From: Mantamonas sphyraenae STR306
Lineage: Eukaryota > Protista > CRuMs
Assembly (NCBI GenBank): GCA_026936335.1
Contig: JAPMXV010000033.1
Span: forward strand, 186,001 to 250,000
DNA length: 64,000 nt
Reading direction: 5' to 3'
The notes beneath the pieces were generated by a model. That model made no database searches. It had not been told where the DNA came from and saw only the letters and a list, made by a program, of their open reading frames with translations. Within the stretch, counting starts at the first letter, position 1. Each line of letters opens with the position of its first letter. Made by a program: the position numbers and the translations under genes. Positions 4,857 to 63,507 of this stretch are shown here, piece by piece.

Positions 4857-4891
<35 letters not shown>

Positions 4892-35682: not shown

Positions 35683-36900
35683 ATGTCGTTGATCAACTCG
35701 ACGGACATTGTCAAGGTGGCGACCAAGGGTCTTGTGGACACGTTGACGAAGCTGTTGGAGAGCAACCCGGAAAAGGCGAACCGGGTAGACCATGTGGGCA
35801 GGACGGCGTTGATGGCAGCGGCCGAGTTTGGCAACACCGACGCTGTAAAGACGTTGCTGGCACATCCAAACGTCGATGTGAACATCGTGAGCTTCAAAGA
35901 CAACGAGTCGGCGCTGATGCGTGAGTTGCCGTGGGGTGTCCAGGGTTGACGTTGTGTTTGTGTGTGTGTGTGCGCAAAAGTTCTTTTTGCAAGAGGGCTT
36001 GCGGGTGTGACACGAGTGGACGTATGGAGGTGAACGTGGCGAGACAGGTGTGGGAGCTGTGTGTCCGCTGCCATTGTGTGTGTGGGAGGGGCATTGAGGG
36101 CACAAGGGGCCCACAGTGGAGCAGGGGAGGGTCGCTGACAACCAAGACTTGGGGGTTGGGTGCCTGGATTCGTTTCCCGGACATGGACGGCCACAGGAGC
36201 GGCAAGGCGATCCAGAACGGATATCATGAAGCTGCTGCTGGATGCGGGAGCCAACACATACATTAGGAATTCGAGCGGACAAAGCGTGCACGAACTTGTG
36301 GACGAGGCGGGGTTGCAGGTTCTGATCAACGCAAACACAGGACGGGCACCGACGCTGCTGGATGGAAGCGAGAACACATGTGTGGCAAACGAAGTGTGTG
36401 AACTGGCGGCAGAAGATTCAAACAGCGAGGCGTTGCGTGAGCTGTTGGTAGCCAAGCCATGGGCGCTGAACTCGCAGAACCAGGAACGGCACACGGCGTT
36501 GCACGTGGCGGCCAGAGAGTGCAACGTGGAGTGTGTCAAGGTGCTTCTGTCGTGTGAAGGCGTGGATTTGCACGTGGACAGGCAGTACACGCCTCTGCAT
36601 ATGGCGTACATTGCAGGAAGCAGGGGTGAAACGGTGGTGCAGCTTCTTCAGGAGGCAGGAGCGTCACGAGAGATCAAAGACACCTTGTTTGGCATGGCCC
36701 CCGAGGCACTGGGTCGTAAGGTGGAGAGTGGAAGGATTTCATTGGGTAAGAAGGGCTATCCGATGACACACAGCGACCTTGTGACACAGTCGATGCGCAA
36801 GAAGGCCAGCAAGACGGAGGTCTCCGTTGTGGATGAATTGGAGCGTGATGTTGGTGGCAGTGAGAGCATTGATGTGACCAGCAGCAGTAGTAGTAGTAGT

Positions 36901-36943
<43 letters not shown>

Positions 36944-39900
36944 GTGGGTTGATGAGGAAGAGGAGGAGCAGCCAGGAAATCGGCCTGGCCATGACAAAGA
37001 GCTCGCAGATGAGCGAATGGCTGGATGGGAGCTTGTCGAGATCTGAAAGCATGCGAGGCGAGGACAGCCCTGGACGAGAGATTTCCTTTGATCAGACGCT
37101 GCGTTTGCAGGGGCTGTACCGCAAAGCTGAATTGAAGCTGAACGTCGCCGACATGCAGTCGCTGCGCCCGGATATGTCCTATGTATCACGAGGGCGAGAT
37201 TTTATGAAGGAGTTGACGAGGATGCTTCTGTGGAACGACGAACAGATCCAACAGGGAGGGTTCCCGGCTATTGAACAGGTCATCTACTACTGCAACACGG
37301 TGGACTTTAAGAACGCACCACTGTCCAAGGTGACGGAGATGGACTTTGCTCTTCAGAAGTACACCGCCATTCACTATGGCTCCTCCCTGATTGAGGACGC
37401 AGCGATCGCGCAGTCGGAGGCGGCCAAGACGCTTGTGCAGAGCTTGTTGGCCATAATCGAAGGAGCCAAGTATGTGAAAACATTGGAGGAACAAGGTGTG
37501 CGGGTGCCAAATCGATCAGAAGTGATGGAGACGCAGCTCGTGGAACCGCTGAAGCGGTACAAAGTGCAAACAGGCCGGGCTGCGGTCGGGATGGTGGACA
37601 AGGACGAGGAAGATGACGAGGAGGAAGGTCAGCAAGGGGAGGAGAGAGATGTTGATGATGCGCAAGAGGTTGGGGCGGCCACGTCATCCGTGGAGCTGCG
37701 CTGCTCTGTGTGGCCGTACTACACCGCCGGTACGTTTGCAGAAACGCGCAGAGTGGACAAGGTGCATGTGCACGCGGATGCGTGGCCGACGTTGCGCGTA
37801 TGGACTGCGGACGAACGCACGGCCATGATCACCAAGGTGTTGCAACAAGTGGGGCTGGACGCAGGAGAGGCGACGGTGTATGTGCACGTGTATGCGCAGA
37901 CAGAGAACGTGAGCGAAGTGGCACAGGCTCTGCAGGCTGTGGGTTACAGCGGCACGGTGATTGTGGTGGCCGAACAGTCGCTGTGCGACGCTGACGACGA
38001 GACACAGCAGCGTGTGGCCGAATGCGTGCTGCACAAGACCAACTGGGAATGCGTGGTTCACGTACCCATACCAGCGTTTGGACTGCTGTGCGCGTTGATT
38101 CATGCAGCGGTGGACAAGAACGCAGATGCACAGCAGCTGATCCAGGTGGATGTCGCGCAGTACGACGAAATCGTTTCCCAGGAGATGGAGGCGTGTGCCG
38201 CGGTTGCATATCGATACATGCACACAGAAGAGCAGGCGGTGCGTGTGGAATTGAGCTGGCTGTCTGTGGACAAAGACGGATGGAGCTCGTCGGCCATGAA
38301 GGCAGTGTGCTTTCGCGACTCGGACGAGCTGCGTGCGGCGCTCACACGTGGCAACTGGGAGTTGGAACCGGTGACCCTGATGGATGCGCTGCGTGAGGAC
38401 CCACGCGTGCTGTACGTAGAAGAGCGCGGCTCGCCACGTGTACAAACGGTGGAATTGAATGCGCAGGAGCGCAGTGCAGCGGCTCAGACGATGAGGGTAA
38501 AGATGGGCAAGGCCGAGCTTTCATGCAGCGGTCTTCGGTTCCTCCCACCGCCTTGCGTGATGGTGGAGGAGCGCACGTGGAGCACATGGCGGGACTGCGT
38601 CGACGGTGATGTGATGGCAGTCCAGGGACTGAAGCCGTGGGCGCAACGGCGAGTGGGACGGGATATCCTGCAGTACATGTCCAAGTGGAAGTTCCTGGAG
38701 GCATCCAGGGACGCTGATGATCGCGTGGACAATGCGACGCCGTGGCTTCGGGAACGATGCACGCCAACGTCGTTGCTGAACACACCGAGCATGGACTGGA
38801 GGTTGGCAGGAGAGAACTTGTCAGCGCCTGGAAACGATCCAGCTCTGCGGTCACTTCACCACAGGATGCGCAACCTGTCCAAATGGTACGTGAACCACAG
38901 GAGCACGGTGGAGGTGCTTGTGATGATGCAAGAGAGCGTGGAGGAGGTGAACGCGCAGCTGTCGGGAGTGCGCAGCCGTGAAAGGACGCTGGCTGCCCTG
39001 GTGAGCGAATTGCAGCAACCGGGCATGGAAGATGTGGGAACCCTGGTGGCACGTGAACTGGAGCTGTTGAACGGACAAACAGCGACGCAAACGACGTTCG
39101 ATGACCTGATGAGTGCCGAGGGACGCGCAGCGGAGCTTGTGCGGCGAGTGGAGTACTTGGGCTCCGCGGAAAGGAACTACGGGTACGGGCGCATGACGCG
39201 CGAGAGCTTGCAGGAGGTGTGGGAGGTGGCAGGACAGAGGGAGCTGCGCGTGGACGAAGATAGCACGCTAGGCAACACGACTCTGGTGTTGAAACAGATG
39301 CAGCGCATGGTGGTGGCAGCGCTTGCGTTGGAACTGCAGTATGACCGGGATTCGCAATCGAGCAGCGTGGAAAGCGAGGTGGGCGTCGTGGATGTGGATG
39401 TGGGAGCATTTGGGGGATGCAACGACTCGGTCATGGACATGTGTTGGCGTGCGGCCCTCTTCAGCGACGAGCAGCGCATGAACACGGAAGCGGTGACGAC
39501 GCTGGTGGACGAATTGCTTGCAGGTACGGTACCCGGGGAGTTTGATTTGCACCCGGACGTGCTGGAGAAACTGGCGAACCCGAGCTCCGGGTTTTCCGAG
39601 GGATCGACACGACGGTTGAGTCAACGCTGGATGGCGTGGCGAGTACTTGGCGAAGAGGCGTACACGTTCACCGAGCAATTGATGGCGCTGCAGAGAAATG
39701 TGTCCCTGGCGGTTCCTGATGGGTACATGGAGCTGGGACGGTTGTTGGCAAGTGGACATGTGGACGATACGTTGAATCCGCCCGAAAGCGACCCCGAAGT
39801 GCTGCGTGTTTGGATGGCGACAAAGGAGCTGCTGGGTGTGATGGAGCCACTGCTGGGAGAGTGGCACAGGGGCGCGGAGAAGCGCAGGGAGGCACCTGTA

Positions 39901-42900
39901 ATGCCAAAGGAAAAGGCAGAGGCCGAGGCTTGGGAAACGTACGGACGTGTGGTGGACGGTGTTTTCCAGCGTACAGGAGACGTCGTGTCGCAACAGGAGC
40001 TGGTTGCAAGTGTGCTGGGGGTGCCTCAAGCCGAGGTCCAGGATCAGTGGAATGTGCTGATGAGCTGCATGGACGTGTTGGCGACGGGGTACCGCGTGCA
40101 CTGTTTCTTCCGCGTGCGGTTCCTGCGCTGTCGGGACACACGTGTGCGTGCACGCATGGAGCGCGAGTGTGGCACAAACAGGACGCGTGCGTCGAGCGGC
40201 GTTGTCCAGAGCATGATCGAGCGATTTGGAGACGAGCTGGACACGGCGATCGAGGCAAGCAAGATGGACGTGCGCCTCGTAGATGTGCACGCACTGCGTG
40301 CGGAAGACATGCGTGCACTTGGGGAGTGGGAGCATGGGGACGAAGCGAGCGTGCTGTGTGCAACCCTGAGTGTGCTGCAGAGCAGCTGGGAAGGACAGCG
40401 CGTGCGCTTGACACGAGAGGACCTGAGCGGAGGTGGATGTGTGCGCGTGTTGCGCATGGTGCGTGCGTTTGACGTACACCATGTGACACCTGCCATTGTG
40501 GCGGAAATGTGGTGCAGCATGCGGCATGGGTTGACGCTTGCGGGCGAGGCAACACAATGCTGTGCGGCGTTTCTGAGCCTTTTGGGCCATGTGGTGGAAC
40601 TGGTGCGAGTGGCCATGGTGCGTGGTGCGCTAGGGTCCTTTTCGCGGGACCGGGAGCAGGAAATCCAGACGAGCTGGCCCGGCCTGGTGGAGTTTGGGAC
40701 ATGGGTGGAACAGCTGTTGGACGGCCCCAGCCACGACCGTGAGGGTGTACTTGCGGAGCGCTCAAATGCGCCGGTACAATGGACGATGGACGTGCAGCTG
40801 CATGGGAGCCAATGGCTGCGACATTTGCTCGGGGACGAACGGAAGAGCGTGAGCGCGCCCATTCTGGAGCAAGCGGTCGAACAAGGACGAGAACTGGACA
40901 CAGGCTTTGCGCACAATGCGTTGGAGGCGGTGACGCTCTTTAGCGAAAGTCGCAAAATGTATGCGACGGTGTTGGCCCACCTGAGAGGCCAGGATCGTCG
41001 TCCTCTGCAGCGTGTGCAGCGCATGCAGACAAAACAGGGTGTGCACCGGGGTCCAATGAGTGCACGCACACGCGAGCGAGAAGCGTGGTTTGCTGCACGT
41101 GCAAAGCTTGTGCGCAAGTGCACACCCGGCATCATGCAAGATGTGGCGGATCTGAAGATGCAGGTGTCAACAACCGGCGAACGCGGCACGCTCACATCGA
41201 CCAAGACTCTGGACGGGTTTTGGCCCCGATACGGTGAGCTGTTGAATGGCCTGCAAGAGTCTGTGTACCCGCGTGAGCAGTTTGAGGCGCTGTACGCAGG
41301 TGTGGCGAGCGGGAATGGCGTATTCGCTCTGGTGATGGAGGAACTTTGCCTTCTTGCTGGTTTTCAGGGCCGCATGAGTGCCTTGGACGACACGACGTTG
41401 TGTACGTTGCTTCTGGCTGTTGCTCAGGTGCGCCCACAGCATCTGCGCGTGCAAACTGTCGCACGCGTGGCCAAGGTGGCAAGCATGGCGTGGATGCACC
41501 CCGAGAAGCTGTGGAATGTGTCTCCGCTGCTTGCAGACATGCAACAGTACGTGGATGTCGTTCTTGTACAGAGGCTATCCCGCTCACCGTTGTGGCACGG
41601 AGCACCCGTGCTGACGCGCGAGGTGTTGGGCCACGAACGGGCGAGCTTGCGCGAGCGGATGCAGCGTCCTGATGGACGGTACTTTGATGGACGGTACTTT
41701 TCATATACCTTCAACGATGCGGGAGGTGAGGCGCGCGTGGACCAGATCCTGCGCCAGGTTCTGGAGACCGGAGACGTGTGGCGCGAGTCTGGTCTGGCAA
41801 ACGTGGGTCGACAGGTGCAAAAGGAGGGACAAGACCAAGACCAGAACGACTACAACACGAAAGACCTTGCACTTTGGTGGACACACCTCGACCCACACCG
41901 GAAGGCATCGGTGACGGATGCGTACGCCAACTCCAGGGCAAGAGAAAGGCAGGAAGCGCAGAGATTGAGCCCATCCCCGAAACAAGTGCAATTGGAGCTG
42001 GTGATGAAAGCCAAGTTTGGCGATGCGCCTGTAAGCGTGCAAATTCCCCTGGGTACGCCGCATGCAAGTGCCAAGGATTTGGACCAGGTGTTGGGCAAGC
42101 ATGGGGCTCGTGGTACCCTGCATCTGGGCGCAGGGGACATCGCATATGCTGTGGACATGCTTTGGGTGAACACGACAGTTGCAGCAGAGTGTAAACCGGT
42201 GGTGGAGGCGCATCTGCGGGAGCTGCTGTCGTTGCAAGAGCTTGTGTTCAACACGCCGCATTCGACTGTTGTTGCGCTGCAAGAGCGCTCAGCATGGAAA
42301 CCAAGCACGGCAGCGAAAGATCGAGTGTGGCAGCACATGACGCGTCGTAGTGTCGCGCTTAGCAAGGCTGTGTGCGAATGGCCTGACATTCGGCAGCTGA
42401 CGCACGTGCGTGCCGATTGGGTTCTGCAGGCCGTGGCGTTGCAGTTTGGCTGGTCCGCAGAGGCCCTCGGGGCAGCGCTGAACCGGGTGGACAACCATGT
42501 GGACGCAGAACGCCTGGCTGGCCTGTACCACTCGCGCTCTCGCAAGATGCTGGAAGGTGTGGCACGAGGAGATAGCCAGGCGATGGAAACGTTGCGAGAT
42601 ATGGAAAGGGGGATGCGGGAGAGCCGTGGGGATTGGTCACACGTGGATCTGCCCGCAGAGGTATTGCTGAGTGTGGTGGACACGCTTGTGGTGGGACGTG
42701 CCCTGGCAGACATGTGGGAAGGAGGATTGGCAAGCGTATGTGTGCCACTGGGTTTAGACGGCGTAGGCGAAGACGAGGAAGAGGAGGCAGCGGTCCCGGG
42801 AGATGTGGTGCAGTGGCTGCAACGAGGCGACAGCTCGCAGTTGGAAACACATGTGACGGCGATGGCGAGTGATGTGGAGGGAGCATGCGAGGCGGCTGAG

Positions 42901-45900
42901 GAGCTGCTGGAGGAGCTGGGGATGGAGGCGGAGTTGGACTCTGCGTGGGCGGTTTTGGCGGTAGGGCTGGAGATGGAAGCCGGCCTGGGCCAGATGATGG
43001 CACGGCAATCAGACACGTGGTCGGATGAGGGTACCAAGGGGTTAAAAGAGGCGAGTGAGGCACTTTACCGCCTGTGGCGACAAGGGTCAAAGGCGTGGGT
43101 GGGCGAACTGGAGAAGTTGGTGGATGGGCGACAGGGCGGCAACGGCGCGGTTGTGGCGCTGCCCACGGTGGAAGTGAAGGAGGAGGTGCCGTTGGACTTG
43201 GGGTACGGCGATTCGAATGAGCGCATGCGCGGTGGAGATAGCGAGGAGGGTGAAGGTGAACCGAGCGAGTCGGTGCTGTTGCGGATGCACAAAGTGCAGG
43301 AGGAGCTGAGCCGAGTGGTGAAAGAGATGTTTGGAGTGAATGCGATGCGGCGCGTGGCTGCGTTGCAAATCGGCAAGCATGCGGCATGGGAGCGGATGGG
43401 AGAGTTGCTGGATCGGGTGCGCTGTGTGGCGGAGATTGTTGCACGGCGAAGCAGCATGTGCGAGCGTGTGTTTAGAGTGTCACAAGGTCTTGTGGCGGCA
43501 AAGGAGGCGCTGGTTCGAGTACCATGCCAGGCAGATGAGGCCACGAGTCGTTTGGAGGGTGCACTTCAGGAGGCGTGTATGGCCGTGGGTGAAGCGATGA
43601 ACGTGCACAGCGGGACGGGTCTGTACGAGGCGTACAGTGTAACGCACGTGTTGCTTGTATGGCTGCGCGACGTGCGTGCAGATATTCGAATGGTGGTGAA
43701 AGGGCGGTCGTACGGACGAGGCGGTGGTCTGCGGACGCTGACGCGCATGGAATGTGCACGGCGCGTTGCAGAGACACTGCGACAGATGGGACAATGGGAT
43801 GTGTTGGGGCTGGGAGTGCTGGACATGGCGGAGTTGGACGACGGGGTGGAGCGAGATGGTTCAATTGTGGAGGACGTTGAAGAGCTGCAGTGTTTGCACG
43901 AACACGTGATGTCGGTGTTGCATGCGCTGGAGCGCTCGCCCGTGCAGGTGGGGGCGGACCTAAAAACGGGTCGCGTGCGTGCGTTGGAGATGCGGATTGC
44001 ACAGTGCATGCACGTGGGCGTGGTGGGGCGGCTCATGTCCATTCTGGAACGGGGCCTTGGTGAGGGCAGTGGCGGTAGGAAAGGCAGAGAGTGGAAAGAA
44101 TTGCACAGCAGGGTGGACAAAGAGGTGCGGAAACTGCGGCTGGTGGAAGAGGCGCTGGCAACGACGCTGTTTGACCAGCTGCGCACGATGGACAGCAACC
44201 TGGGCTTTGTAAACGAGTTTCTGACGCAGCTGAACAACGGTTCGTCGCTGGAACTGCTGGCGTGGGAGAACTTTGCGCGTGAAGAGGTGCGGAACGTGGT
44301 GTTGTGTGTGTGCAAGAGCGAAGATCTGCAGTGGGTAGCGCGCACGATGGAAGACGTGGGAGCGCTGGAGGAAGAGACGGTGGCCAGGATGATGGCGAAG
44401 GTGGAGGAGGTGTGCAATGAGTCGGACACCGGTGTCGTTGTGGAAGAGGCGCGTGTGACATGGGGTGAAGCAGAACGAAGTCTGCTTGCGGAGTCTGCAC
44501 GCAACATTGGCGAGGAGCAGACGAAGTACGTGGCAGCGAGACTGGCTCCCCTTCGTGAGGAGTTGGAGAAGCTGGATGATGTGGAGATGCGCAAGCAGTA
44601 CCTTGTGGGTGGCTTGTCGAGTGTGTTGGGACTGGGTTTGATGGTGCTGAAGATCCGGCTGCGATTCCAGGGGTGGATGAGGGACAGTCTGATTTCATCG
44701 GAGCTGCGTATGACGCGGGAGGACATCCAGCACCTGTTGCACGTGCGCGTGTCTGAAGGCACGATCCAAGTGGAACATGTGTTGGATGCAATGGGCCGTT
44801 CGTCGCCGGAGGAGTATCGCGCGGACAAGAGCTGCATGGTAAAGGTGATGAACATTGTGCAGGGAACACTTGGGAGCAAGGCAGGCAGTGGACGCCAGCT
44901 GTTTGAAAGCGAGGGACCGGCGCTGCAGGACCGACTGGCGCAAGTGGGTGTTGCGGACGTTAGCCTGGACGGTATGGCAGAGTGCGGCGAAACGCGCCTG
45001 GATCAGGAATTGACGGCGACGAAAATCTTTGCTGTGAGCGAGCGTGCGAGCTTGCTGTGGCAGTGGATCAAGACACTGATGGAACTGCGCTTCATGAGGG
45101 CGATGCAGGATCTGGCGAGCGGCCTGCACAGCGGCGGGCCAAAGTCGAAGAAAGCAGGTGCGAAGCGAGAGTCGAACTACGGCAGCAACTACAAGGGCCA
45201 AGCGACGATGGTGGGGTCTTTGGAAGAGGTGGACGAGTCGCTTGTGGACAGTTTGTACAACAGCGCGTCTGTGATGGCGCAGGAACGAGATCAAGTGGTG
45301 GATGAAAAGGACACCGAGTTGTTCGAGGGATTTGGAACAGGCGACGAGGACGCGTCGATTGCGTCTTTGTATGGGTCGGCGGCGTTGGGGGTCGGGATGG
45401 TTGTTGGCGAGGATGACACAGAGGCGAGTGGTGGGTTGTATGGTGCAGTCAATGTGGTTGACACCGGCGCTGGTGTTGGTGGTGGAGGGTTGTACGGTGC
45501 TGGGGCAGGTGCGTCTGTGTCGGGGTATGGTGTTGGCGCGCAGCAGGGAGGGGGTGTCGGTGGAGGTGTCGGTGGATCCGGGTATGGCGCTGGTTCTGGT
45601 GTGCAGCAGCTGGGTGGCGATGCAGGAGGTGTCGGTGGATCCGGGTATGGCGCTGGTGTTGGTGTGCAACAGCTGGGTGGTGATGCAGGAGGTGTCGGTG
45701 GATCCGGGTATGGTGCTGGTGTTGGTGTGCAGCAGCTGGGTGGCGATGTTGGTGGATCCGGGTATGGCGCTGGTGTTGGTGTGCAGCAGCTGGGTGGCGA
45801 TGTTGGTGGATCCGGGTATGGCGCTGGTGTTGGCGTACAGCAGCTGGGTGGCGATGTTGGTGGATCCGGGTATGGCGCTGGTGTTGGTGTGCAGCAGCTG

Positions 45901-48900
45901 GGTGGCGATGTTGGTGGATCCGGGTATGGCGCTGGTGTTGGTGTGCAGCAGCTGGGTGGCGATGTTGGTGGATCCGGGTATGGCGCTGGTGTTGGCGTAC
46001 AGCAGCTGGGTGGCGATGTTGGTGGATCCGGGTATGGCGCTGGTGTTGGTGTGCAGCAGCTGGGTGGCGATGTTGGTGGATCCGGGTATGGCGCTGGTGT
46101 TGGCGTACAGCAGCTGGGTGGCGATCTAGGTGGTGTTGGTGGATCCGGGTATGGCGCTGGTGTTGGTGTGCAGCAGCTGGGTGGCGATGTTGGTGGATCC
46201 GGGTATGGCGCTGGTGTTGGTGTACCGCAGCTGGGTGACATCTCTGCGGTCGGCGGCTCTGCATATGGCACGGCGGGAACAGTCGAGCAACTTGGAGACA
46301 TCGAACAAACCGTGTCGCTGCCGGGTGAGACCAGCACCATCGGAGGAGCTGCGTACGGGAACCCTGTTGCCCTGGACGATCTAGAAGGGCTCACCAGCAC
46401 CGTTGATGGAGAGGACGATGAGGAAGACGAGTATGGCGACGAGGACGACGAGGAAGACGAAGAAGATATGGAGCGCAAGCGCAAGAATGCGATCAAGCTG
46501 GTCAACAATACGCATTCACAGGTCAACAAGAGGGGAAACTCTCGCCTGCGGAGCGTCTTTCAACGTGGCGTGAATGCCGCACGCATGCTGGGCCAGAAGA
46601 ATAGCACCAAGATGCAGCTGTCGGACGTCGTTCTTGAGGCCAAGCGCCTCGAGGAGAGCGTCAACATCGAAGAGGTGCTCAAAATGGACGCAAAGGGCAA
46701 GACGTCGATGGGAGTGCTGGAGACCAGCGAGAAGCTGAGTTTGTCCACACCGCTGAGTGAGCCGTACAGCGAAAATGTGTGGCTTCTGTTTGCAGAGTTT
46801 GACCGCAACGTTGCCATGGAGGAAGGGGCGCGTCACTTTGGCTTCTCCGGCTCCGCCGTTGGCATGAACAGCCACGATGCCATCTCGGCCATGCTTACCG
46901 CCGATCGCGAGGTGTGGAACAACAGCAAGTTGTTTGGAGAGGCAGTCGTGCGTTCGTGGGACGCAGAGCGCACGGAGGAGCAACAGCAGGCTGCCATTGA
47001 AGACATTGCATCTAAACAAGAGCCGGTGGGTGCGTTTGGCTCAGCCGGCATTGTCCAAGATGTGCGTGACTGGAACGAAGAGTTTCAGCAACTGCTCGAA
47101 TCGCCCACGCTGTCGCCAGAGTCGATCGACGAGCGCTCCAAGGCGATCGCACGCCTGTCGCGTGAATTTGTGGAAGCCATTGCGGAAGGCGTCAAGACGG
47201 TCATCCACGAGATCCACCTGCCAGCATCGCTAAAGTCGATCAAACCCGTCGCAGGCAAGGGCGTAGCTGGAGGCGAGAAGTACATCTACAAGGGTGCGTT
47301 CCTCAAGTTTGCATTTGACGACAAAAATGTGTATGGCAAGAACAGGTATGCGATGAAGGCGGCAGGTCACGAGCTGAAGGGTCTGAACGCGTACATCTCG
47401 TGCGGCGTGGACCATCTACACTTTCCCCTCATGGCTCTGTTGGACTACGGCGGCTACCGCATGATTGCGACGTCGCTGCTGCCCATTGGTGGAAACAACA
47501 ACGAAACTCTTATCTACGGCTCCGACGACGCGGGCGACACTGTGCACACGGACGACGAACGCTTGAATGAGATGATGGAGGCAGCCGCAGCCAAGATTGG
47601 ACTCAAAGCACACACAGTGCAACAGATGAGCCTTCCCATGCAGCCCAAAGTCCTTTGTGGGCCGGTCGACGTCGAGGGACACAGAGGCACGGACGGCCGA
47701 TACTACATCCTGGACACAGCTCGCGTGTTCCCGCCACAGGTGCCTGCAACCAATGCCATGGGAGAGGTGGAAATCGACTGCTACTATTTGATTCGCCTGT
47801 TCCGGCGCGAGTTCCTTGCGCGGTACGATGAGCCGCTGTCGTCGGATGCGCTGAGCCGATTCGTGCCAGACGATACCGAGGCAGAGGCAAACAACATGGG
47901 TGTGTTTCATGCCACGTCGGTGCTGTTAAAGCGGTTTGTGCCTACGCTGGCGCAGCACCTGGACTCTGAGTGGACCAACGGGGAGCTCAAGTTGGAGAGC
48001 GCGGACCAGCTGCGCGAGCTGGTAGAAGTGACCCACCGTATGGGCGTCAACGTGAGGTGGCTGGGTGCGGTGCGTGACCGAACAGAGAACTCCGAGTTGC
48101 GCAAGGCTCTGCTCGTGGAGATGATTGCGCGAACGGCACGAAAGATTCTGGGTCACAAGCTGCGCGGGGCAGCGGGTTCTGTGGTGTATCGGCGCAACGA
48201 ATACGAGAGAATTGCATGCACACTGCTGAACGACATGTTTGGCGTGGGTACGCGGACTCGAGAGATGATGTTGCGCGTGGAAAAGATGGTGATGGAAAAG
48301 TACCCGCGTGCGCTGAGGGACGAAGAGCGAAACATGGGAGGGCATGGTATCAAGACACTGCTTGGGGTGCGAGAACACGATGTTCTGCTAGAGCGCATCG
48401 AGCAGTTGACCGGTATCGAGGTGGAATGCGCGCGGCCTGCGTTTGTGAAGCTGGACGAGAGCGTGCTTGTGGCGCTGGACGAGCGCAGAGGCTTTAGCGG
48501 CCTGGAAGAAGCGAGCAGTAGCTTGGGCGTGTCTGTGAGCAGCGCGTTGAGCAGTGCGTCAAGCAGTGTAGGAGGCGACGGCGATGGGCCGTTGTCGGAC
48601 GTGGCCCTTGGGGTGCATGTGGTGACGTTTGACCACGTGCACTACGTAGGCATGGTGGTGAAGCACGTAGACGCGCAGCCGTTTAGCAAGGACATGGTGC
48701 ACAGCAACAAGCACGACGACATTGTGTCGTTTTACAAGAAGCAGCTGGAGCTGTACGAAGAGTGGTACGGCAGCCAATCGTTGACTCTGTGCAAGCCGCT
48801 GCGCAACCTGGCCATGGTTTACGCCGAGTTTGGCAAGTACAAGGACACGCTGCGCACGCTGAGCCAGCTGTTCAGCTTGGTGGACGACACAGTTGTCCCT

Positions 48901-51900
48901 GACCAGGGCCAGTCGGCAGAGAGCAAGTTGGACGTGACATGGGAAAAGATCGAAGCGTATCTCCTTCACGGACGCATTCTGCTCAAGTTTGGCGAGTACG
49001 AACAGGTAAAGTCGCTGGTGAAGCACGCCAAGAAGCGTGCGCCGCCTGAGCTGAGACTGGAAGCGTATGTGGCCGAGAAAAAGGAGACTGAAGAGCAGCG
49101 AAGAAGCCGCAAGAACAAGGGCATCCGAGCGAAAATCAGAACAGAATATGTGACGCCGGGGCCGGCGATTCTGCGCTGGTTCAAGACGCTGCTGGGGCTG
49201 CGGCAGCTGGAAGATGCAGTGACCTTTCAAACCTCAGGAGGGATTGTGGATCTGCAGCGTGGAAGCATGCAGCGTGAAAACCATTTGTCGCGGATGAGCA
49301 CGCTTATTGAGCCCATGGAAAAGGGGTTTGTGATGAACGTGCCGACGGCGAAGCGGGGAGCCGGCGAACAGGTGCGAAGGAGGCAGAGGAGGCGACGAAA
49401 GCTCAAGTACAGGGTGAAGATGCGCGAAGAGGAGTGGAGTCTGTGCATGCTGATTGAGAACCGAGTGCACCGGCTGGAAGACCCGCGAGCAGATTTGGAG
49501 CTGTTGCAGGAGATGGTTGGGCAGAAGCACAGCAGTGTGGGCAAGTACATGCTGCAGATGGCTGACATGTGGCTACACGGAGTGCTGGCGGATAGGAGCG
49601 TGTCGTCTGTGGACATGGCAGAGAATCTGGTGAAACATAGCGTGGACATCCTTGCAAACTCGTTGGGCTTCCTGACGCAACAGGTGGGCATGGCGCGATT
49701 AACGCTGGCCGCGGTGTACCTGCGACGTATGAAGTACAACGAGTGTCTGAAGCAGACGGAAATGGCGGTCAAGGTGCTGGAGTACGCATTGGGCGAACTG
49801 AACGAGAAAACGCTGGAGGCGCGAACGCGACTGGTCAAGGTACTCGAGACCATGCAGCTCAAGGGGATGGTGGATGGAAAGCGTGTGCGAGAGGAGGAGG
49901 TGCTACTGAACCTGTTGAAGCAGCAAGCAAACCGTGTGCCCAGAGCTGTGGAAGGTGTGGACCGTGCTCGCACGGAGGGTGTGCGTGTGGATCTGCGCGG
50001 GCTGGTAAAGAGTGACGTGTTTGGAATGGCCACGTGGGACATGGACGCAGTGCGGGGTGAGAAGGAGCGGACGTACAAGGCGACAGGCTTGGGAACAGTT
50101 TACTCGATGGAGGTGATCGTGAAAGTGGACGGAGAAACACGGACGGTATCGATGCCCGTTGCAATTGTGGAGCTGGTGGAGGGGGTGGGCAATTCGGAGG
50201 GGGTGATGAACGGAGTGCGGTACTTTGAGACGCTGCCTGGCCATGGTGCCTTTGTGGTGCCTGCATTCATGCAAATGCCGCGTATGCTGTGGAAGGAGGA
50301 GCGCACGAACGAGCTGCAGGTTGTAGTGGACGACCGTGTGATTCCGTGTGCATATGTGACGATGAAGCAGTCGGCGACGCTGAAGGAAGTGCGCGAGGAG
50401 CTGGAGACGCAACGGCATCTTGCAAACGGGTCGGTGCTTGGTCTGCCAGAGACGTTCCAATTTGTGTACCCGAACGCGATGCAAGCGTTTGGTGGAGTGC
50501 AGGCGCCAACGCTGACGGAGGAGTTTGTGCGTGTGGAACAGCTTGCATGGGAAAAGCGAGGGCGGCCAATGGGCCTGTTTCTGCACGTACGCAGCCAGTG
50601 CGACGAGGTGTCTGTGAAACTGGTCAAGGCGGAGCAAGCGCGGGGTGCGCAGTTGCTTGAGGCAGCGAGCAAGAGCCGCGAGGCGGGAAGCAGTAGCAGT
50701 AGCAGCAGCGAGTGGGGAGTAGAGGAGGACAGCACGATGGGATCGGAGGAGTGCATGGTGGAGATCCGGTGTGGCACAGAAACAATGCTCCGTGTGGATG
50801 TGGGTGGCGTGGAGACGTTGCTGGACGAGGTGCGTGAGCTTTGCGGAGACGGAGCGAGAGAGTTGCACTTTGTGTATGCTCGTGGACGTCGCAGGGGCCA
50901 GCGGGTGCCGCGGGAGAAGGAAGGCGGGACAAAGGTGGAGATGTGCATGCCCATGTCGACTTGCAAGGCTGAACGAGAGGAGAGGGGATACACGCATGAT
51001 CACCAGTCGGGGCGACGAGGGGCACCTGCGTCGAGTGTGAGGCGTTGGTGGGGTGCACAGGTGCGACGCAGGCACCACAAGCATTGCCATGAACTGGGAA
51101 AGGCGAGGGAGGATGTGAGTGTACGCAGCAACGTGTTGGCACTGGAGTGTGCCTTGATGCTGGTGTTGACAGAACGCGAGCTGGGCGAAGGAGTGGATGA
51201 TGAGGACGAGGTGGAAGCTGGTGAGGAGATGGTGACATGGCTGCCAGGCGCTCTGGAAGAGGCGTGTTCCACACGTGACATCCAAGAGGTGCGCCGTGTG
51301 GTGGCGGAGATGGGCACAGACGAGCTCGTGTGGCAGGACTGGAAGGGACAGACGATTCTGCATTGGTGTGCACGCGAGGTGGCAAACGAGGCGTGCAGCG
51401 AAGTGATGAAGCGAGCGCGACAATGCATGACCAAGAAGCAGCTGGAGATGTGGTGCGGATTGAAGGACAACAACGGCGTCCTGGCGCTGGACTTGGCGTT
51501 GGCGCATGAATCCATGGGTGTTGTGAAGGAGCTGTGCAGGCACGGTGCACTTGAAAGTACAGAGCTTCTGGGCTTCCGGGTGGGTCGTCTACTGGATCGC
51601 GGGGAGATAGAGCTGAGTGCGGTGAACGCTGTGTACTGCAAGCAGATGGACCACCTGGACGCGTTGAGCGAACGCTTGGACGTGTGGCAAGAGCAATCTG
51701 TGTTTGGCACAGTGATGCACATGGTGTGTGCAGTGGTGAAAGAGAGCGAGACAGTGACGGAGCTTCTGGAGCGTGGAGGACATGTGCAGCTGGCGTCTGT
51801 GAACGGCTTTGGGCAGAACTGTCTTCACGTGGCCATGACTTGTGGCAACGTGGGTGCGACGCGTGCAATCCATGACTGGTACATGCCGAAACAAGAGGCT

Positions 51901-54900
51901 GCGTTGCAGGACCTGCTTGCGGAAGATCGACAGCGGATGATGTACGAAAGGCGCCGAAAAGGAGCTAAATCGGGTTGGAGGGGAATGCTGGAGAAAACGA
52001 TTGCGGCGGGCCACATCGAATGCGCCCTGGTGATGGACGACGTGTACTTGGACGAATGGGAGATCTTCGGCCCGATGGTGAACCGGGTGGCAAACCAGAT
52101 GGGCATTGTGTGGCGCTATGGCGCATCAAAGAAGCGAGGTCTGGACGGACGCGTGTGGGACCCGCAAACGAGCAAGCGCAAGGTTGCGTGGCGCACCGTC
52201 TCACCGTGGGAGACAGAAGATGAAAAGACGCTGGTGGTGAGCAGCGAGACGGAAACACAGTACGCGTGGCAAGATGCAGTATGGGCGGGAGATGTGTCGA
52301 GAGCATCCGCGTGGATGCAGCAAGTGGGCCAGTATGAGGAGTGGGAAAATTTGTGTGCGATGGGTTGGACGCCACTGCTGCTTGCTTGTGAGCGTGGCGA
52401 CACGGAGATGGCGCTGTATGTGTTGTCGGTGGACTTTTTCGATCCGCTGGACGTGACGCAACGAGGTGAAAGTGTTCTCCACATTGCAGGGCGGCGGGGA
52501 CTCGTGAGAGTTCTGGAGAAGCTGGAGGCGATGTTGGAGGACGAGACTTTGGAGGAGATGCAGGGGTTGCAGACGGTGGGCAGTGCGTACACAGCGTTGC
52601 ATGTGGCTTTGTTGGAAAAGCAGTTTGAGGCGTATGAGACACTTCTGCGGATGGGTGTGGATCCGAGTGTGCAGGATGCGTGGAAACGTGCGAGCTGGGT
52701 CCTGGAGGAGGAGCTGCGCGGCGGGGTTGTGGAAGCTATGCTGGCTAGGGACGAGTCGCGGCTTGCGTTCCTGGAAAGGTGGCACCACGGACGCGTGACG
52801 GGGTATGGTACGTGTGCGTACCATCGGGACGAGCTCATGCTGCACCTTGGCCACTATGCGGTGATGGCAGGGTGGCTGGACGGGTTGAAGCTGGTGAAGG
52901 CAGAGTACGGCGTGCGTGTGCACGAGTGCCTCGTCGGCCAACTTTCTTCACAACCGAGTGAGTCGCAAAACGCAACGTCCAAGAGTCCTCAGGAGGCAGG
53001 GACACTGCTGCAGTTTGCACTGACTCAGAGATCGGATGACAGCATTGTGCTGTGGCTACTGGAGCAGGAGGAGGAGTTGGAACATGTGGAGACGCGCAAC
53101 GAGAGCGGCAGGAACGCACTGGAGATTGCATTGGTGTGGAATGCGAGCGATGCTGTGGTCGAACGCCTTTTGGCGCTGATGGAGTCTGCACATTCTGTGT
53201 ACAGCATTGAACCGCGGTCGGAGTGGAGCGCGCTTCACACGGCTGCAGCTTTGGGCCGTGTGGAGTGGGTGCGCACCATGCTTGCATGCAAGGAGCTGGA
53301 ATTGGCAAGTGAGGAGAGCGAGGAGCGGCGAGTGGAGCTTGAACCGAGGGGTTGGCGCGCGCGCGGGGTGACGGAAACAGCACTGGAGGTTGCAGTGCGG
53401 CACGGGCATGCAGAGATTGTGGCGTTGCTGTTGGATGCTGGGAGTGTGGTGAGTGCATCGCGTGTGGTCAAGGCGCTTGCGGGCGGAGGTGCAGTGTCGG
53501 TGGCGGAAGTGTTTGAGCACCGCGGGCTCGAACTGGACGTGTCTGAGCTTGCAGTGGCTGCGTACGACATGCGCGAGATTGAGATGATGCATTGGGCGTT
53601 GGCACGTGGGCAGTGGGCACGCGAGTCTCGGTCAACTCACGTGAGCCGAAGGTGCTGGGGCGAGGAGGAGGACCGTGTGGTGGGCGACATCCTGGAGCGT
53701 CATCAAGATGTGTACGCAGCGATGAGTGCGTGCATGTACAATGTGCACAAAAACGCAGCGTGGCGACAAAGCATGCTGCGTGTGTTGCGTTCTGGTCTGC
53801 TGCCAGGTTTGGCGACCGAGGGGGACGATGTGAGCCGTTTTCTGCGTGACGTGTTGTACCTGTGTTGTGACGAGTTTGACTCGGGCGACGCGGAGTGCGT
53901 TGGCGAGGCATGGGTGGCGCTCGCGCGTGAGCAGGAGAAGGGGTCGCGCACCGATGTATTGTGGCTGAACAGCAGGGTACAGCCGAGCAACATGGTGCTG
54001 TGCGGTTTGGCAGAGAGTCTGCTTGAGATCAAGAGACTGGAAGGGATGATGGATAGTGGGGAAAGCGCATCATCGCCATCAGCATTGGCCGCTGAGGATG
54101 GCAGTGAAGGAAGTGGAAGCGAGGAGGATGATGATGACGACGAGGTGTGGGTGTCCAACGTTCTGAAGGCGTTGAGTGTAGAGGTTGCCCTTGCTTGCAA
54201 CCGCCGCGAAGTGGTGCTGGGCAAGCTGGAGTTGCACACGGGCTGGGTCGGGCGCTACCGGAAGCTGTGCAAAGAGGGACAAGGGATGGCGTGCAGGGAG
54301 ACATTGCAGTGGATGATGGATGAGGTGCTGACGAACGGCGAGGTGATGGGATTGCGAGATTTTGTGCCGCTGATGCACGCTGTGATCGAGTTTGCACAGT
54401 GGGAGGTGTTCCAGTGGGTGTGGCTCCGTGTGGTAGAGGCCGGCGAGGTGTCTACAGAGTATTACCGCGAAAAACTGGTGAGTATGTTGGAGCGTGCGTG
54501 CACGTACGCCGGGTCTGCGTGGATGGCCGACCTGGTGGTGTGTGCACACAGCCGGGGGCGACGTGGAAGCGCACAGGCTGTGGAGTCGATGGTGGAGAAC
54601 GCAGGCATGAGCGTCAGTACGACGGTTGTGGAGAGGCTTGTGCAGGGTGGAAGTATGAAGGAGGCGGAAGCGGTGTTGGAGCGTGCAGACATGAGCAGAG
54701 CAGATGCAGAGACGTATGGAAGAGTGTTGGCGAGCGGCGCAAGGGAAATCTCGTGGACGGATGATCTGTTTTCGCTTGTGCGGGCGCTGGTGAGTCAGAT
54801 GGGCATCGAGTGGATGTACGAGGTGTGGATGTGTGTGATGGTCCGCGGGACCATCGTGGGCGAGGCTCTGCGAACGCCAGACCTGGTCAACTGCATGCTG

Positions 54901-57900
54901 GAATCAGGTATGGTGCGGCATTGCACGGGGCAACAGTCGTTTTTCGGCTTTCTGCGTGGAGAGGATATGTGGAGGCGATGGGCAGAGGTGACGGTGGCCG
55001 AGTTGAGTGTGGACGAGGTGTTGGCGTGGTGGCTGAGGAACATTTACCTGCTGGACACTGGGGCGTGGTTTGAAGGATTCCGGGTGGTGTGTGCACACAC
55101 TGGGACGGAAATCATGCGCGAGCGCGATGAGTACTCCGTGCCGCTGGCGAGTGCGGGGATATTGTTGGCGCGAGCTGGGATGGTGGAGGAGTTGATGTGG
55201 CTGCTGGATCGCGGTCTGTGCAAGGCGGGCATGCGTGAGCTGGGACGGGCAGCTGCAATTTTGCACCGGAGCGATGTGTTTGTGGCGCTTGCGAGGCGCG
55301 GGATGCGATGCGAGCGGAAGGTGATGGTGCGACCCATGGAAGAGGACGGCGAAGTCAGGCGGTGTGTGGAACGTGTTCAAAAGTGCGTGGCAACGTGGAG
55401 TGAGGGCAAAGTGGGAAGCAGCGCACACTATGCTGCGGAGCAGGGCTGGGAAGATGCGCTGGCACTGTTGTTAACGGATGAGGTGCTGGCCGAGGCGGAC
55501 GAGAGTTTCGGGACGGTGTTGGCCGCAGCTGTGCGCAGCGGAGAGCCTGAGATTGTGGCACAGGTATTGGAGAGAGGGGACGGGGTAGATGGGCATGCTG
55601 TGATGGAATGTGCGCTGTTGAAGGAGGAGAAGACGGCGATGGAGCTGTTCCAGACACTTGTGGAAGCAGGCGGGCGCCTGTGGTTTGGTACGGTGAACTG
55701 TGCAGATGGAGACAGGTACCACGGGGCGAGCGTATTCCATGCAGCAGTGGTGCAAGGTCACACGGAGCTTGCCGCGCTGGTGTTGGAGACGTTTGGAGAC
55801 AAATGCGTGCAGCCTGTGCGCTGGGAAAGGGCTGCGGTACGGCCGCGTCCGGGAGGAATGCGTGTGGCGTTTGTGGACATTCGCGAGACGGACGTAGAGC
55901 ATGAGCCGGCCGAAACTAGGTTTGCACACACGGTTTGGCTCGTTGTGCGTCACCTCGGTGTGGCTGGAGAGGCTTTGGCGGCGCAGGCGCTGGAGATGGA
56001 GGAGTGGGAGCTGTCCAAGGATGTGGAGTATGCGGCCGCAGAAGTGTACCATGTTCTGATGAAGAATCGACTGTGGAATCTGTGCATGGAGTGTGTTAAA
56101 AAGGGAGGGATGTCCGAGATTGGGGCTCCGAAAATGGTGGAGTGGCTGTGCGCAGGTGGTAGTCCGGCGGAAGGCGAGCTGCTGGATGCGGCGTTGCAGA
56201 TGGGCGATGAGACGTGGATTGAGAAGGGGCTTTGCGGAGGAGGCAAAGGCGTGTTTACACGCAAGCTGTTGCAGATGCTGCGTGACAGAGGGTCGAGTGT
56301 GCCGTGGTCGGTGGGACGTCTGGGACATGTGTGGGCCGCTGCAGATGAGGGGCAACGCCGATGGATGGCAGAGCAGCTGTGCGACGACGCGAGTGCGGCG
56401 GCAGCGGCGGTGCGGGCGGGTGTTGGCGTGGAATTGCTGAGAGGCATGAGGCTGGAGGGTCGTTGTGTGTACACAGCTCTGGCGTATGGGCGCGTGGATG
56501 TGGTGAGAATGGCGTGGCAGGAGGGAGTGGTGTCTGTGGATGGAGACGAGGCCGGCAGAACGTTGGTGAGCTGGGCGCTGAGTGGCGGTCGAGAGGTGTC
56601 GGCAGAGATGGTGGACCTGTTGAGACAGATGGGCGTGGACACGCACAACAGGGCCATTGTGAAGGATGCACGCGAAATGGGATTGTTGGAGACGGCGAGG
56701 CGTCTGTATGGAGAGCCTTGGGCAGGCGCGAGTGTGTATGGATGGATGGAGCGGCGAATGGGGAGGGAGGAAGCGTGTGAACGTTGGATGCGTTTGACGT
56801 GGAGCAAGCGTGGTGTGCTGGAGCGCTTGACGTTGCTGGACGATGTGGCTGGCATCGAGGCCGTTTTCGGAGCGGAGAGCGTGCTGGAGGAGGTGGAGAA
56901 ACTGGGGTGGCCTCGAGAGGTCGCAACAAAGGCAGGCAAGCCGCTGCAGTTGGGCTTTGTGGGATGGTGGAACGACTCGGATGAGGAGGATGAGGAGGAA
57001 GAGGAGGAGGAGGAAGAAGAAGAAGATGAGAACACGGACGCAGGGACGGTTCAAAAATGGGTTGTGGATGCGGTCAAGGCGGACAGTCCTGGCGTGCTGA
57101 GATGGATCCTGGAGCACAGCAGAGAGGTGGGGCGACATGCAGAGACGATGTTGCAGGCTTTGCAGAGGGCGTTGGAGCTGCCACGTGCCGCATGTGTGGA
57201 GATTGTTAGCGAGAGGTTGTGCGACGACGTGGTGGTGGAGATGATGGAGACCTACGAGTTTTTGCTGCGAGACGTGTGCGAAAGCAAGTGGGGAGCGGGA
57301 GTGCTGGAGAAGCTGGGCGAGTGCGTGGGCGTGCACAACGTGTGCAACGATGTGGTGGAGCAGAAGCTGGCGCTGGTGGCGTGGGGCGTGGGGCGATATG
57401 ACACTGTGAGGCTGATGCGGATGTGGTTTGAGGAACAAGGACGGTCGGAGGAGCTGTTGACGGAGCATCTGGACACCGATTCGGTGTGGAAGCGCGGCAC
57501 GGTGTACGGATTCACCGATGTGGCAATCCGACACAACCCGACAAGCACGGAGGATCACTGGACAAGCAAGTCGGGATATCGTGGAATGCGGACAGTGTGG
57601 GACGCAGTGCGGTACCGGCAGCATCAGTCGCTTGCGGCAGTGCTTGATCTGGAGGTTTTCGACGTGGATGCGATGCGGCACAAGATGAGCAGGGGCAAGG
57701 AGAAGGTGTCGCTACTGGAGTGGTGTGTGTGGTGCTGCAACGAAGAGGCGATGGAGCTTGTGTTGGAGAGGGGAGCCAGTGTGACGCAGAGGAGCTTGAA
57801 CCTTGCCATTGAGCGTCGTTGCGAGAACGCATGGCTGACGTTGTGGCACAAGGGGCAGGAGATGGGCGACGTGTTTGAGACGGACAGTGAGCACATGGAG

Positions 57901-58416
57901 CGGGTGCTGTTCCACGGGATGGAGCGTGTGCTGAGCGTGCTGAATGTGGAAGTGGGCCAGCAGGAGGCGTCGACGATGCTGATGGGAGGCCAGGCGGAGC
58001 TGGTGGGCAGGCTGAGCGTAAACAGCGAGTTGAACATGGAAGAGGATGTCTGGACGCAGCAGTTTGCAAGCGACCTTGCGCTGCAGGCGGGTTTGGAAGA
58101 AGAGGCAGCGGAGAGTGCGGCCGGCAAGGAGGTTGTGCGTCCGGAGAGACCTTTTGCGGTGGATGTGTTTGTGCAGAACCGCAAGCAGGGCAACATGGAT
58201 ATGTTTGATTGCGTGGCAACGTGGGATGCAGACGGTCTCCGAAGGCTGCTGGAGCGTGGACGCTGGCGAGCTGTGCTTGGCAGTGTGTACGGGCAGCGGC
58301 TGTTGGAGTTTGCAGTTCAACGGCGCAGTGCGGAGTGCGTGGCGGTTTTGGGGGAGTTTGGGATGGATGTGAGTGGAGTGGAGATGGAAGAGCGAGCGTG
58401 GTGGGAGGAGGATTGA
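35683..58416 (+). CDS. Giant (~7,485 aa) ankyrin / Clu central domain / TPR / CAP-Gly protein; exons 35683-35920, 36197-58416
   Basis: Ankyrin repeats at both ends (GRTALMAAA, HTALHVAA, GWTPLLLAC). Clu motifs RDWNEEFQ, AMKAAGHELKGL, PLMALLDYGGYR, LIYGSDDAG, VEGHRGTDGRYYILDTARVFPP, HRMGVNVRWLG (~47065-48150). TPRs ~48720-49860. CAP-Gly-like VELVEGVGNSEGVMNGVRYF...HGAFV (~50158-50262). Exon 2 is 22.2 kb without a stop. Confidence 0.88.
45571..46240 (+). repeat. Coding minisatellite, 12 units of 54 bp (three of 63 bp) encoding GGSGYGAGVGVQQLGGDV
   Basis: GGATCCGGGTAT recurs at 45574, 45637, 45700, then every 54 bp to 46078, then 46141 and 46195. Confidence 0.95.
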
Positions 58417-62548: not shown

Positions 62549-62592
62549 TTGTGTGTGTGAGCTGGCGCAGTGTCGGGCAGAGAAACGAGTTG

Positions 62593-63507
62593 ATGAAGAC
62601 AACGCACAAGATTGCCATCGGCGTGGGCACGGCCGTCGGATTGGCGCTACTGTGTGCCTACATTGGCGTGCAGGCGACAAAACTGGCGGAACTCGCACGG
62701 ACGCCCGTTGTCTCGTCGCAGCTGAAGGTGGAGACCAACTTTTCGATGCCTGACATGGCGATTTTCATCACGGGAGAGCAGGGATTCCGCATGCGGCTGC
62801 GGCAGGTGTCGTTCCTGCCAGAAGGGCCGACGCATGGGGCTCAGACGAATGCGTCGCTTGGGGATGTGAGTGGAGGGGCGAGGGAAGGATGGAGTGTGGG
62901 TGGTGAGTGAGGTTGGCTGACGCAAGAGGTGAGAGTGCAGTCAGCGTGCCATGGTGACGGATATGGTGACAAGATCTGCTGTCTGTCGAATGGGCCGGTG
63001 GGCAAGGATGCACGTGCGTCGATGCTGTTTGACGTGGCGACGCTGTTTGCGGAGCCGCCGGATCCCATGGCGACAACGTTTTTGACGCTTCGCACGGCGC
63101 CACGGGGCTCGTTCAAGGACTGTGCAGCGGTGCTGGCGAACCAGACGGGCTTGATTGGGACGGATATCGTGCCGGTGCCGCTGAACGAGACGTCATACGT
63201 GAGGTTTGGGCATCGGTTTGTCCAGAACGGGACTCGGCTGACGGGGTCGACACAGGGAGTTCGGGAAGAAAGTTTCCCAATCTCTGGCCTCTCGAAAATC
63301 GGGGAATGGAGGGGTGCGAGGATTCTGGCTGCTTTCCAGCAGGCAAGCTACGAAGAGGTGACGCTGTTGCCGAGTGGGCTGTCTGTGGTGGATCTGCTGG
63401 GCCAGGTGGCCGGCCTCCTGGGCCTGTTCATCTCGTTTGCCAACGCGGTGCGGCTGACTGTGCAGGCAGCGCAGACGCGGTCGGACATGGAGAGGCCATT
63501 TCGGTGA
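62593..63507 (+). CDS. 279-aa two-TM protein resembling DEG/ENaC and PAC (TMEM206) trimeric channels; exons 62593-62865, 62941-63507
   Basis: TM1 (IAIGVGTAVGLALLCAYIGV), post-TM1 TPVVSSQLKVETNFSMPDMAIF, five N-glycosylation sequons, YEEVTLLPSGLSVVDLLGQVAGLLGLFIS into TM2; GTGAGT...CTGAC...CAG intron in frame. Confidence 0.65.

Follow-up and report, generated by a model that had tools for sequence, protein, structure and literature searches.

A giant Clu-domain protein of Mantamonas sphyraenae within a diversified non-canonical Clu family

The window analyzed here, a stretch of 64,000 nucleotides (nt) from the protist Mantamonas sphyraenae STR306 (GenBank assembly GCA_026936335.1, contig JAPMXV010000033.1, positions 186,001 to 250,000 of the forward strand), contains at positions 35683..58416 a gene predicted to encode a protein of 7,485 amino acids (aa), hereafter called the giant. 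The giant is most probably a real single gene, encoding a non-canonical paralog of the Clu proteins with an architecture of which only this one copy exists. No other member of the large and diversified family of non-canonical Clu-domain proteins of M. sphyraenae reaches its size, and its Clu core is embedded in ~6,500 residues found nowhere else. For ~60% of the protein, no relative could be detected anywhere. The conserved part is restricted to a cassette of ~500 aa, composed of the Clu and CLU-central domains (aa ~3605-4130) and followed by tetratricopeptide repeats (TPR). A first-pass annotation of the window had proposed a new family of cytoskeleton-anchored Clu scaffolds with an unrecognized architecture, and our results support only part of this proposal.

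A single gene with a 22.2-kb exon

The main body of the gene is a single open reading frame (ORF) located at 36160..58416 on the forward (+) strand, as are all the features of the giant described below. Residues are numbered along this ORF, residue k beginning at nt 36160+3(k-1). It comprises 7,418 stop-free codons, where the base composition of the window predicts ~269 chance stops (probability of no stop ~1e-119). The GC contents of its first, second and third codon positions (~0.65/0.43/0.70) are maintained in all 500-codon blocks except for the glycine repeat, and agree with those of four neighboring genes. The absence of stops, together with this uniform GC pattern, indicates that the whole ORF is coding and forms one unit under selection.

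Upstream of this ORF, we predict a first exon at 35683..35920 (79 codons and 1 nt, phase 1), whose start, ATG 35683, is the first ATG past an in-frame stop. It encodes the first ~2.5 ankyrin (Ank) repeats, matching the Pfam families Ank_4, Ank_2 and Ank with E-values of 4e-10 to 7e-8. Exon 1 is in the same frame as the long ORF, with three in-frame stops between them, and these stops fall in a predicted intron of 276 nt (35921..36196, GTGAGT...CACAG, with GT..AG ends). At the junction 35920/36197 a codon is completed, and so is an ankyrin repeat (…SALM-R-AARRS…LLLDAGAN). From this continuity of frame and Ank repeats, we infer a two-exon model (35683..35920 and 36197..58416) giving the 7,485 aa, where exon 2 extends over 22.2 kb (36197..58416, 7,405 codons plus stop). 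The ORF, the coding statistics and the splice model thus return the same ~7,485-aa length and the single 22.2-kb exon that had been claimed in the first-pass annotation. Two minor features of this region can be mentioned. The intron contains an imperfect (GT)n microsatellite (35950-35975), and its 3′ end displays two in-frame acceptors located 3 nt apart (NAGNAG) within CAGGAG at 36194-36199. Use of the second acceptor (AG at 36198-36199) would result in a protein of 7,484 aa, differing by one residue (R-A vs P).

The same locus could alternatively produce several shorter genes or products, through internal promoters, polyadenylation or proteolytic processing, or be a mis-assembled chimera, all the more as the regions flanking the low-complexity Gly-Tyr repeat described below have no known mutual link. 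However, the 7,418 stop-free codons with their one uniform coding signature point to selection on a single frame, since separate genes would each carry a stop. Furthermore, the assembly is a polished, long-read assembly close to chromosome scale (25.06 Mb in 78 contigs, the longest of 751,365 bp, with a GC content of 59.19%), and the transcriptome contigs of M. sphyraenae reach 32.28 kb, showing that very long transcripts do get assembled in this species (PMC10492846). We therefore consider a set of shorter genes, or a chimera, highly improbable and retain a single gene.

The Clu cassette, its paralogs and its outside relatives

The Clu domain (PF13236) is located at 47068..47742 (aa 3637-3861) and is well conserved, as previously claimed: it matches Pfam CLU with an E-value of 3.5e-61 over positions 1-223 of the 225 of the profile, and scores 212.6 bits in a profile scan of its own genome. 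It is followed by a CLU-central (eIF3_p135-like) region at 47743..48537, extending to aa ~4126, where the alignments to the paralogs and to all the outside relatives presented below end. This CLU-central (PF12807) is partial, covering positions 9-67 of 171 of the profile (E 6e-7). Next, the TPR region at 48709..49929 (aa ~4184-4590) was correctly recognized as similar to that of the kinesin light chain (KLC): it matches the structures of KLC1 and KLC2 (E 2e-4), and Pfam TPR_12 scores 31.1 bits against a cut-off of 30.1, with a second, weak TPR_12.

The giant is not alone in its genome. The CLU profile retrieved 30 matches above cut-off, corresponding to ~27 separate loci, in frames of 447-7,425 codons, within a 25-Mb genome of ~9,400 genes. 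The giant is the largest of these genes, of which other examples are found at contigs 71:112334, 72:141656, 32:152245, 29:324803, 9:171530, 56:274178, 57:214403 and 42:384292. It shares with its paralogs only the region aa ~3613-4225, with 26-47% identity, while the domains accompanying the cassette differ between loci, as far as their partly read flanks show. The second-largest paralog (contig 29, 315000-324999) has a frame of 4,999 codons, in which the cassette is followed by Laminin_G_3, an array of the Arm/ARMC5 type and three SPRY domains. The partners are RCC1/RLD in the paralogs of contigs 9 and 72, LRR-Roc-COR (ROCO) in contig 56, a right-handed beta-helix in contig 57, Ank in contig 42, and TPR in contigs 9, 38 and 32. 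The nearest paralog, on contig 32, has a Clu-central-TPR_12 organization. In a quick tree of the Clu region, in which most forks are unsupported and which we used for the nearest paralogs only, the giant is located beside the paralogs of contigs 32 and 56, and the Mantamonas paralogs are scattered among foreign sequences. This expansion of the Clu cassette is large and apparently undescribed, the literature searched containing no account of one.

The canonical CLU/CLUH/Clueless/FRIENDLY proteins show the same order of Clu, CLU-central and KLC-like TPRs as the giant. This shared order, with the strength of these matches, could be taken to mean that the giant is the CLU/CLUH orthologue itself, enlarged by terminal accretion and keeping the functions in mitochondrial distribution and mRNA. 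However, the canonical proteins have ~1,300 aa and carry the CLU_N and GSKIP domains, whereas Pfam scans of the whole giant and of its pieces detected neither CLU_N (PF15044) nor the GSKIP-like domain (PF05303). The lack of CLU_N is the less informative of the two, since a genome-wide profile scan found no CLU_N anywhere in M. sphyraenae. Moreover, the genome has its own likely canonical orthologue on contig 21 (~183,700-187,000, - strand), a 1,300-codon frame with GSKIP_dom, Clu, CLU-central and TPRs. No other gene of M. sphyraenae has a GSKIP_dom match, which here lies just 5′ of the Clu match, and the CLU-central match of this gene is full-length (profile 4-171, E 8e-33). The Clu region of the giant is also far nearer to the non-canonical Clu proteins (E 1e-75 to 1e-34) than to the CLU_N-bearing canonical CLU (E 1e-25 to 1e-8). 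That the giant is an enlarged orthologue is thus extremely improbable, and its position as a non-canonical paralog is preferred.

Outside M. sphyraenae, the protein search retrieved 79 Clu relatives of 570-4,095 aa, from Balamuthia, Physarum, Pelomyxa, dictyostelids, Thecamonas, and unnamed transcriptomes and metagenomes. In these amoebozoan, apusomonad and other protist proteins, the domains joined to the cassette are diverse, including DEP, PH, SH2, LRR, kinase, WD40, C2, FHA, globin, Mob1, YEATS, LRR with E2, RCC1, villin headpiece, amidase, Ank, and Ank with RhoGEF. All 79 align to the giant at aa ~3605-4130 only, and none of them carries a CAP-Gly domain. In a separate search among proteins of 4,080-12,980 aa, none with a related Clu region was retrieved. 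The exact arrangement of the giant is therefore absent both from this size class and from the 79 relatives, and in this respect the unrecognized architecture announced in the first-pass annotation stands. The top outside matches (P0045-P0048, 1,934-2,367 aa) are fusions of LRR, Clu, CLU-central and UQ_con (E2), an architecture of which we found no description in the literature searches made.

Nevertheless, multi-domain and even giant cytoskeletal Clu proteins have been published (PMC2906285, PMC4541047), so the giant does not belong to an undescribed kind of protein, contrary to what had been claimed. In Dictyostelium, CldA (SH2, Clu and TPR), CldB and ComB are non-canonical Clu-domain proteins that coexist with the canonical CluA in one genome, as observed here for Mantamonas (PMC2906285). 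Likewise, the giant combines Clu and CLU-central with unrelated domains in a genome encoding a canonical CLU. As in the giant, the Clu domain of CldA and CldB (followed by TPRs in CldA) is found in a non-CLU setting, beside interaction or signaling domains, and the amoebozoan Cld-type proteins are the best database matches to the giant (31-46% identity), although only the cassette aligns. CldA and CldB, of 1,300-1,500 aa, contain either SH2 or no additional domain. The giant is five times larger and differs from them by its Ank arrays, its Gly-Tyr repeat, its relic of a CAP-Gly domain and ~4,500 aa that are unique to it.

A second precedent is FLAM3 of Trypanosoma brucei, a large protein of the flagellum attachment zone with an N-terminal CLU and 567-aa repeats (PMC4541047). 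As the giant, it is very large and associates Clu with long lineage-specific sequence, and it gives a structural or cytoskeletal role a published precedent among Clu proteins. However, compared by description, the two differ in their organization. In FLAM3, the Clu is N-terminal and precedes two to three copies of the 567-aa repeat (PMC4541047), whereas the giant carries it in a central position, together with TPR, Ank and CAP-Gly, and its long regions are free of repeats. FLAM3-type large tandem repeats were not found in the giant, where the only tandem repeat detected has an 18-aa Gly-Tyr unit, and no FLAM3-like match was obtained in the 4,080-12,980-aa class.

Finally, the succession of the cassette and Ank repeats seen in the giant is also observed in two public proteins (P0066, 1,376 aa, from a metagenome; P0070, Clu with Ank and RhoGEF, from a transcriptome), as well as in the contig-42 paralog. 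Unlike the giant, these Clu-Ank proteins are short and without N-terminal Ank, CAP-Gly or orphan regions, their similarity to it being limited to the cassette, and the Clu tree places the contig-42 paralog on another branch, itself weakly supported.

The regions surrounding the cassette

The N-terminal Ank domain begins in exon 1 and its remainder lies at 36197..36715, to aa ~185 (Pfam Ank_2, E 3.4e-13, spanning aa 82-172). It also matches the PDB structures of ankyrin, NOMPC and DARPin, with E-values down to 2e-18, so that the N-terminal ankyrins of the first-pass annotation are well supported. From there, an orphan region extends over 36727..45339 (aa 190-3060), for which the following searches gave no real match. 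Pfam gave zero families at E<=1 in this region, either in the scan of the whole protein or in that of ten overlapping pieces, and the searches of this region against NCBIfam and of its 2,871 residues against the PDB (phmmer) retrieved no match. No internal repeat was detected by self-BLAST of 200-aa chunks, no second copy by the search of its own genome, and no neighbor by the ESM Atlas features of aa 300-2300. A HMMER search of aa 310-1500 against 1.84 billion representative proteins obtained one marginal match only, which was rejected as chance, being a 42-residue similarity that recurs 12 times in a repeat protein. The C-terminal tail, described below, is equally without a second copy in the genome. 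As the flanks of the cassette have no second copy in the genome and aa 310-1500 have no real relative among the 1.84 billion representatives, the architecture of the giant is a singleton and does not represent a family, in disagreement with the new family initially proposed. The orphan region also includes a (CAG)21 run at 36879-36942, read as poly-Ser in the coding frame and likely length-polymorphic.

These blank searches are relevant for the idea of a Clu scaffold anchored to microtubules by several modules similar to the microtubule-binding domain (MTBD) of the dynein stalk, together with a CAP-Gly domain. The first-pass annotation had placed MTBD-like modules between the N-terminal ankyrins and the GYG repeat. 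No such modules, and no similarity to the dynein MTBD/stalk repeated four times, could be recovered in aa 190-3060, as neither Pfam at E<=1 on the ten pieces, nor the PDB over the 2,871 aa, nor the self-comparison gave any trace of a dynein MTBD.

The CAP-Gly side of this idea has more substance. A degenerate CAP-Gly-like domain is present at 50107..50274, where half of the domain is found and GNSEG replaces GKNDG. Pfam CAP_GLY, whose cut-off is 26.5 bits, is matched with 26.6-31.4 bits and only over positions 28-62 of the 65 of the profile. When the 71-residue piece was compared with the PDB, the 29 matches obtained were all CAP-Gly domains (E 0.002-1.6), including those of CLIP-170, TBCB, CEP350 and dynactin. 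The CAP-Gly call is thus borderline, yet this resemblance argues for a real homology to CAP-Gly domains. With the CAP-Gly proteins (CLIP-170, p150Glued, TBCB/TBCE), the giant shares the C-terminal half of the fold and its GVRYF core, whereas the N-terminal half is unmatched and both the binding motif and the Trp position are changed: when aligned to CLIP-170, GKNDG becomes GNSEG and V/A occupies the position of the CLIP-170 Trp. The Lys and Asn of GKNDG are required for the binding of EEY/F tails, as seen in structures of CAP-Gly domains with these tails. We consequently regard the piece as degenerate because this Lys and Asn are lost and V/A stands at the Trp position. It is also the weakest-scoring among the five CAP-Gly genes of the genome. 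Therefore, the CAP-Gly-like motif reported initially is real as a motif and as a homology, while it does not extend to a match of the whole profile.

The homology of this segment to CAP-Gly domains, and the example given by FLAM3 of a giant Clu protein in a cytoskeletal structure (PMC4541047), are the points in favor of a microtubule-anchored scaffold. Against them stand the lack of any MTBD trace and a CAP-Gly match reduced to half a profile, without K, N or Trp. Cytoskeletal anchoring, as claimed in the first-pass annotation, is unsupported and appears unlikely, and the interpretation of the giant as a non-canonical Clu paralog is preferred.

Next to the CAP-Gly-like piece, two ubiquitin-like stretches had been proposed at 50311..50964 (aa ~4718-4935). 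TBCB and TBCE pair a CAP-Gly with a ubiquitin-like domain. In the giant, these stretches are unverified, as no Pfam family, no PDB match and no homologs for an alignment were obtained for them. A single-sequence AlphaFold model of aa 4600-4960 has a predicted local distance difference test (pLDDT) of 35, too low to be usable, and the succession strand-strand-helix-strand-strand that it shows over aa 4866-4926 is a hint at most. The proposed ubiquitin-like fold is thus unconfirmed.

Directly upstream of the Clu core, there is a Gly/Tyr-rich tandem repeat (45559..46237), made of 18-21-aa units and included in a low-complexity stretch of ~400 aa with 34% Gly. Tandem Repeats Finder (TRF) detected a period of 54 nt with 10.9 copies and 92% identity, and we counted 13 [G/S]Y[G/S] motifs spaced by 18-21 residues, confirming the GYG repeat of the first-pass annotation. 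The high identity of the DNA copies shows that this repeat is a young expansion.

The C-terminal part of the giant was claimed to hold ~2,400 aa of ankyrin sequence. When the C-terminal third is scanned as a whole, Pfam Ank_2 gives an E-value of 5e-40, and the matches of the separate pieces locate an Ank repeat array at 51322..53454 (aa ~5055-5765). In contrast, the remaining ~1,650 aa (53455..58413) contain scattered LLxxGA-type motifs whose Ank identity is unproven: for aa 5766-7418, the Pfam signal is limited to a faint trace of Ank at aa ~6455-6545. The claim is thus valid for the first portion, but not for the rest. The ESM Atlas features of the tail resemble those of Ank proteins (0.95), although with low recognition, and the single-sequence AlphaFold model of its last 1,199 aa (aa 6220-7418, pLDDT 46) displays short helices only, in a repeat-like arrangement. 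Foldseek retrieved generic alpha-solenoids for this model with a TM score of ~0.1, which we discarded as evidence for the fold. From these predictions, the sequence beyond aa ~5765 may be a helical repeat, possibly a degenerate Ank. The tail also presents an acidic run at 56979-57030, where GGA/GAG-type DNA is read as a poly-acidic stretch, likely length-polymorphic.

Putative role, wider meaning and a convergent neighbor

The giant could be a multivalent scaffold. The Clu-central-TPR core would supply a binding activity common to the family, which, by analogy with canonical Clu/CLUH, would most likely consist of binding to ribosomes or messenger ribonucleoproteins (mRNPs) and of granule formation. 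The partners and the location of the protein would be set by its two Ank arrays, together with the ~4,500 aa that are unique to it and mostly helical, while the FUS-type [G/S]Y[G/S] repeat beside the core would favor its assembly by self-association. The segment resembling CAP-Gly would be a relic, probably without canonical EEY/F tail binding now. The granule and ribosome role of canonical Clu is described in two studies (PMC12262889, PMC4210445). For the giant, we regard such a granule/mRNP mechanism as possible but rather doubtful.

Several points weigh against our interpretation of the giant and must be considered with caution. About 4,500 aa of the protein are uncharacterized, and both structure models have low confidence (pLDDT 35 and 46). 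We infer the intron, the start and the lack of internal processing of the gene from its sequence. As the flanks of the paralogs were read in part, their architectures are one-sided, and the poor resolution of the Clu tree makes the subfamily placement of the giant weak. Lastly, a granule/mRNP role for non-canonical Clu cassettes is proposed by analogy.

Work on clustered-mitochondria mutants over 25 years has not yet revealed what the Clu domain does at the molecular level, and the subfamilies on which current CLU reviews are centered are the mitochondrial and the plastid ones (bioRxiv 10.64898/2026.03.13.711532). The Mantamonas lineage is placed close to the base of Amorphea (PMC10492846), and the wiring of one cassette to ~27 differing domain sets in a small genome argues for a general docking module. 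A feature kept across all these sets (canonical CLU, ROCO, RCC1, SPRY/Arm and the giant) should then correspond to the binding surface. In a broader and more speculative reading, Clu with CLU-central would be an ancient, freely combinable adaptor of protists of Amorphea/CRuMs grade, not specific to mitochondria, and the giant would organize a large condensate or cortical assembly. If true, the cassette would dock ROCO/RCC1 GTPase regulators, E2, kinases, SH2 proteins and the giant onto a common partner, such as ribosomes or mRNPs, the assembly of the giant would be built through its FUS-like Gly-Tyr repeat, and Mantamonas, whose 25-Mb genome has ~27 Clu genes, would offer the best opportunity to identify the partner bound by Clu. 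We consider this scenario fairly unlikely as a whole. The giant alone opens no new kind of system and is mainly a curiosity, the more useful result being the family of ~27 Clu-cassette genes in a 25-Mb genome.

As a minor observation on the 3′ side of the locus, the stop of the giant gene (58414) is located 10 nt from the end of a convergent ORF of 1,423 codons (58427..62698, - strand), and the 3′ untranslated regions of the two genes must therefore overlap or be extremely short.

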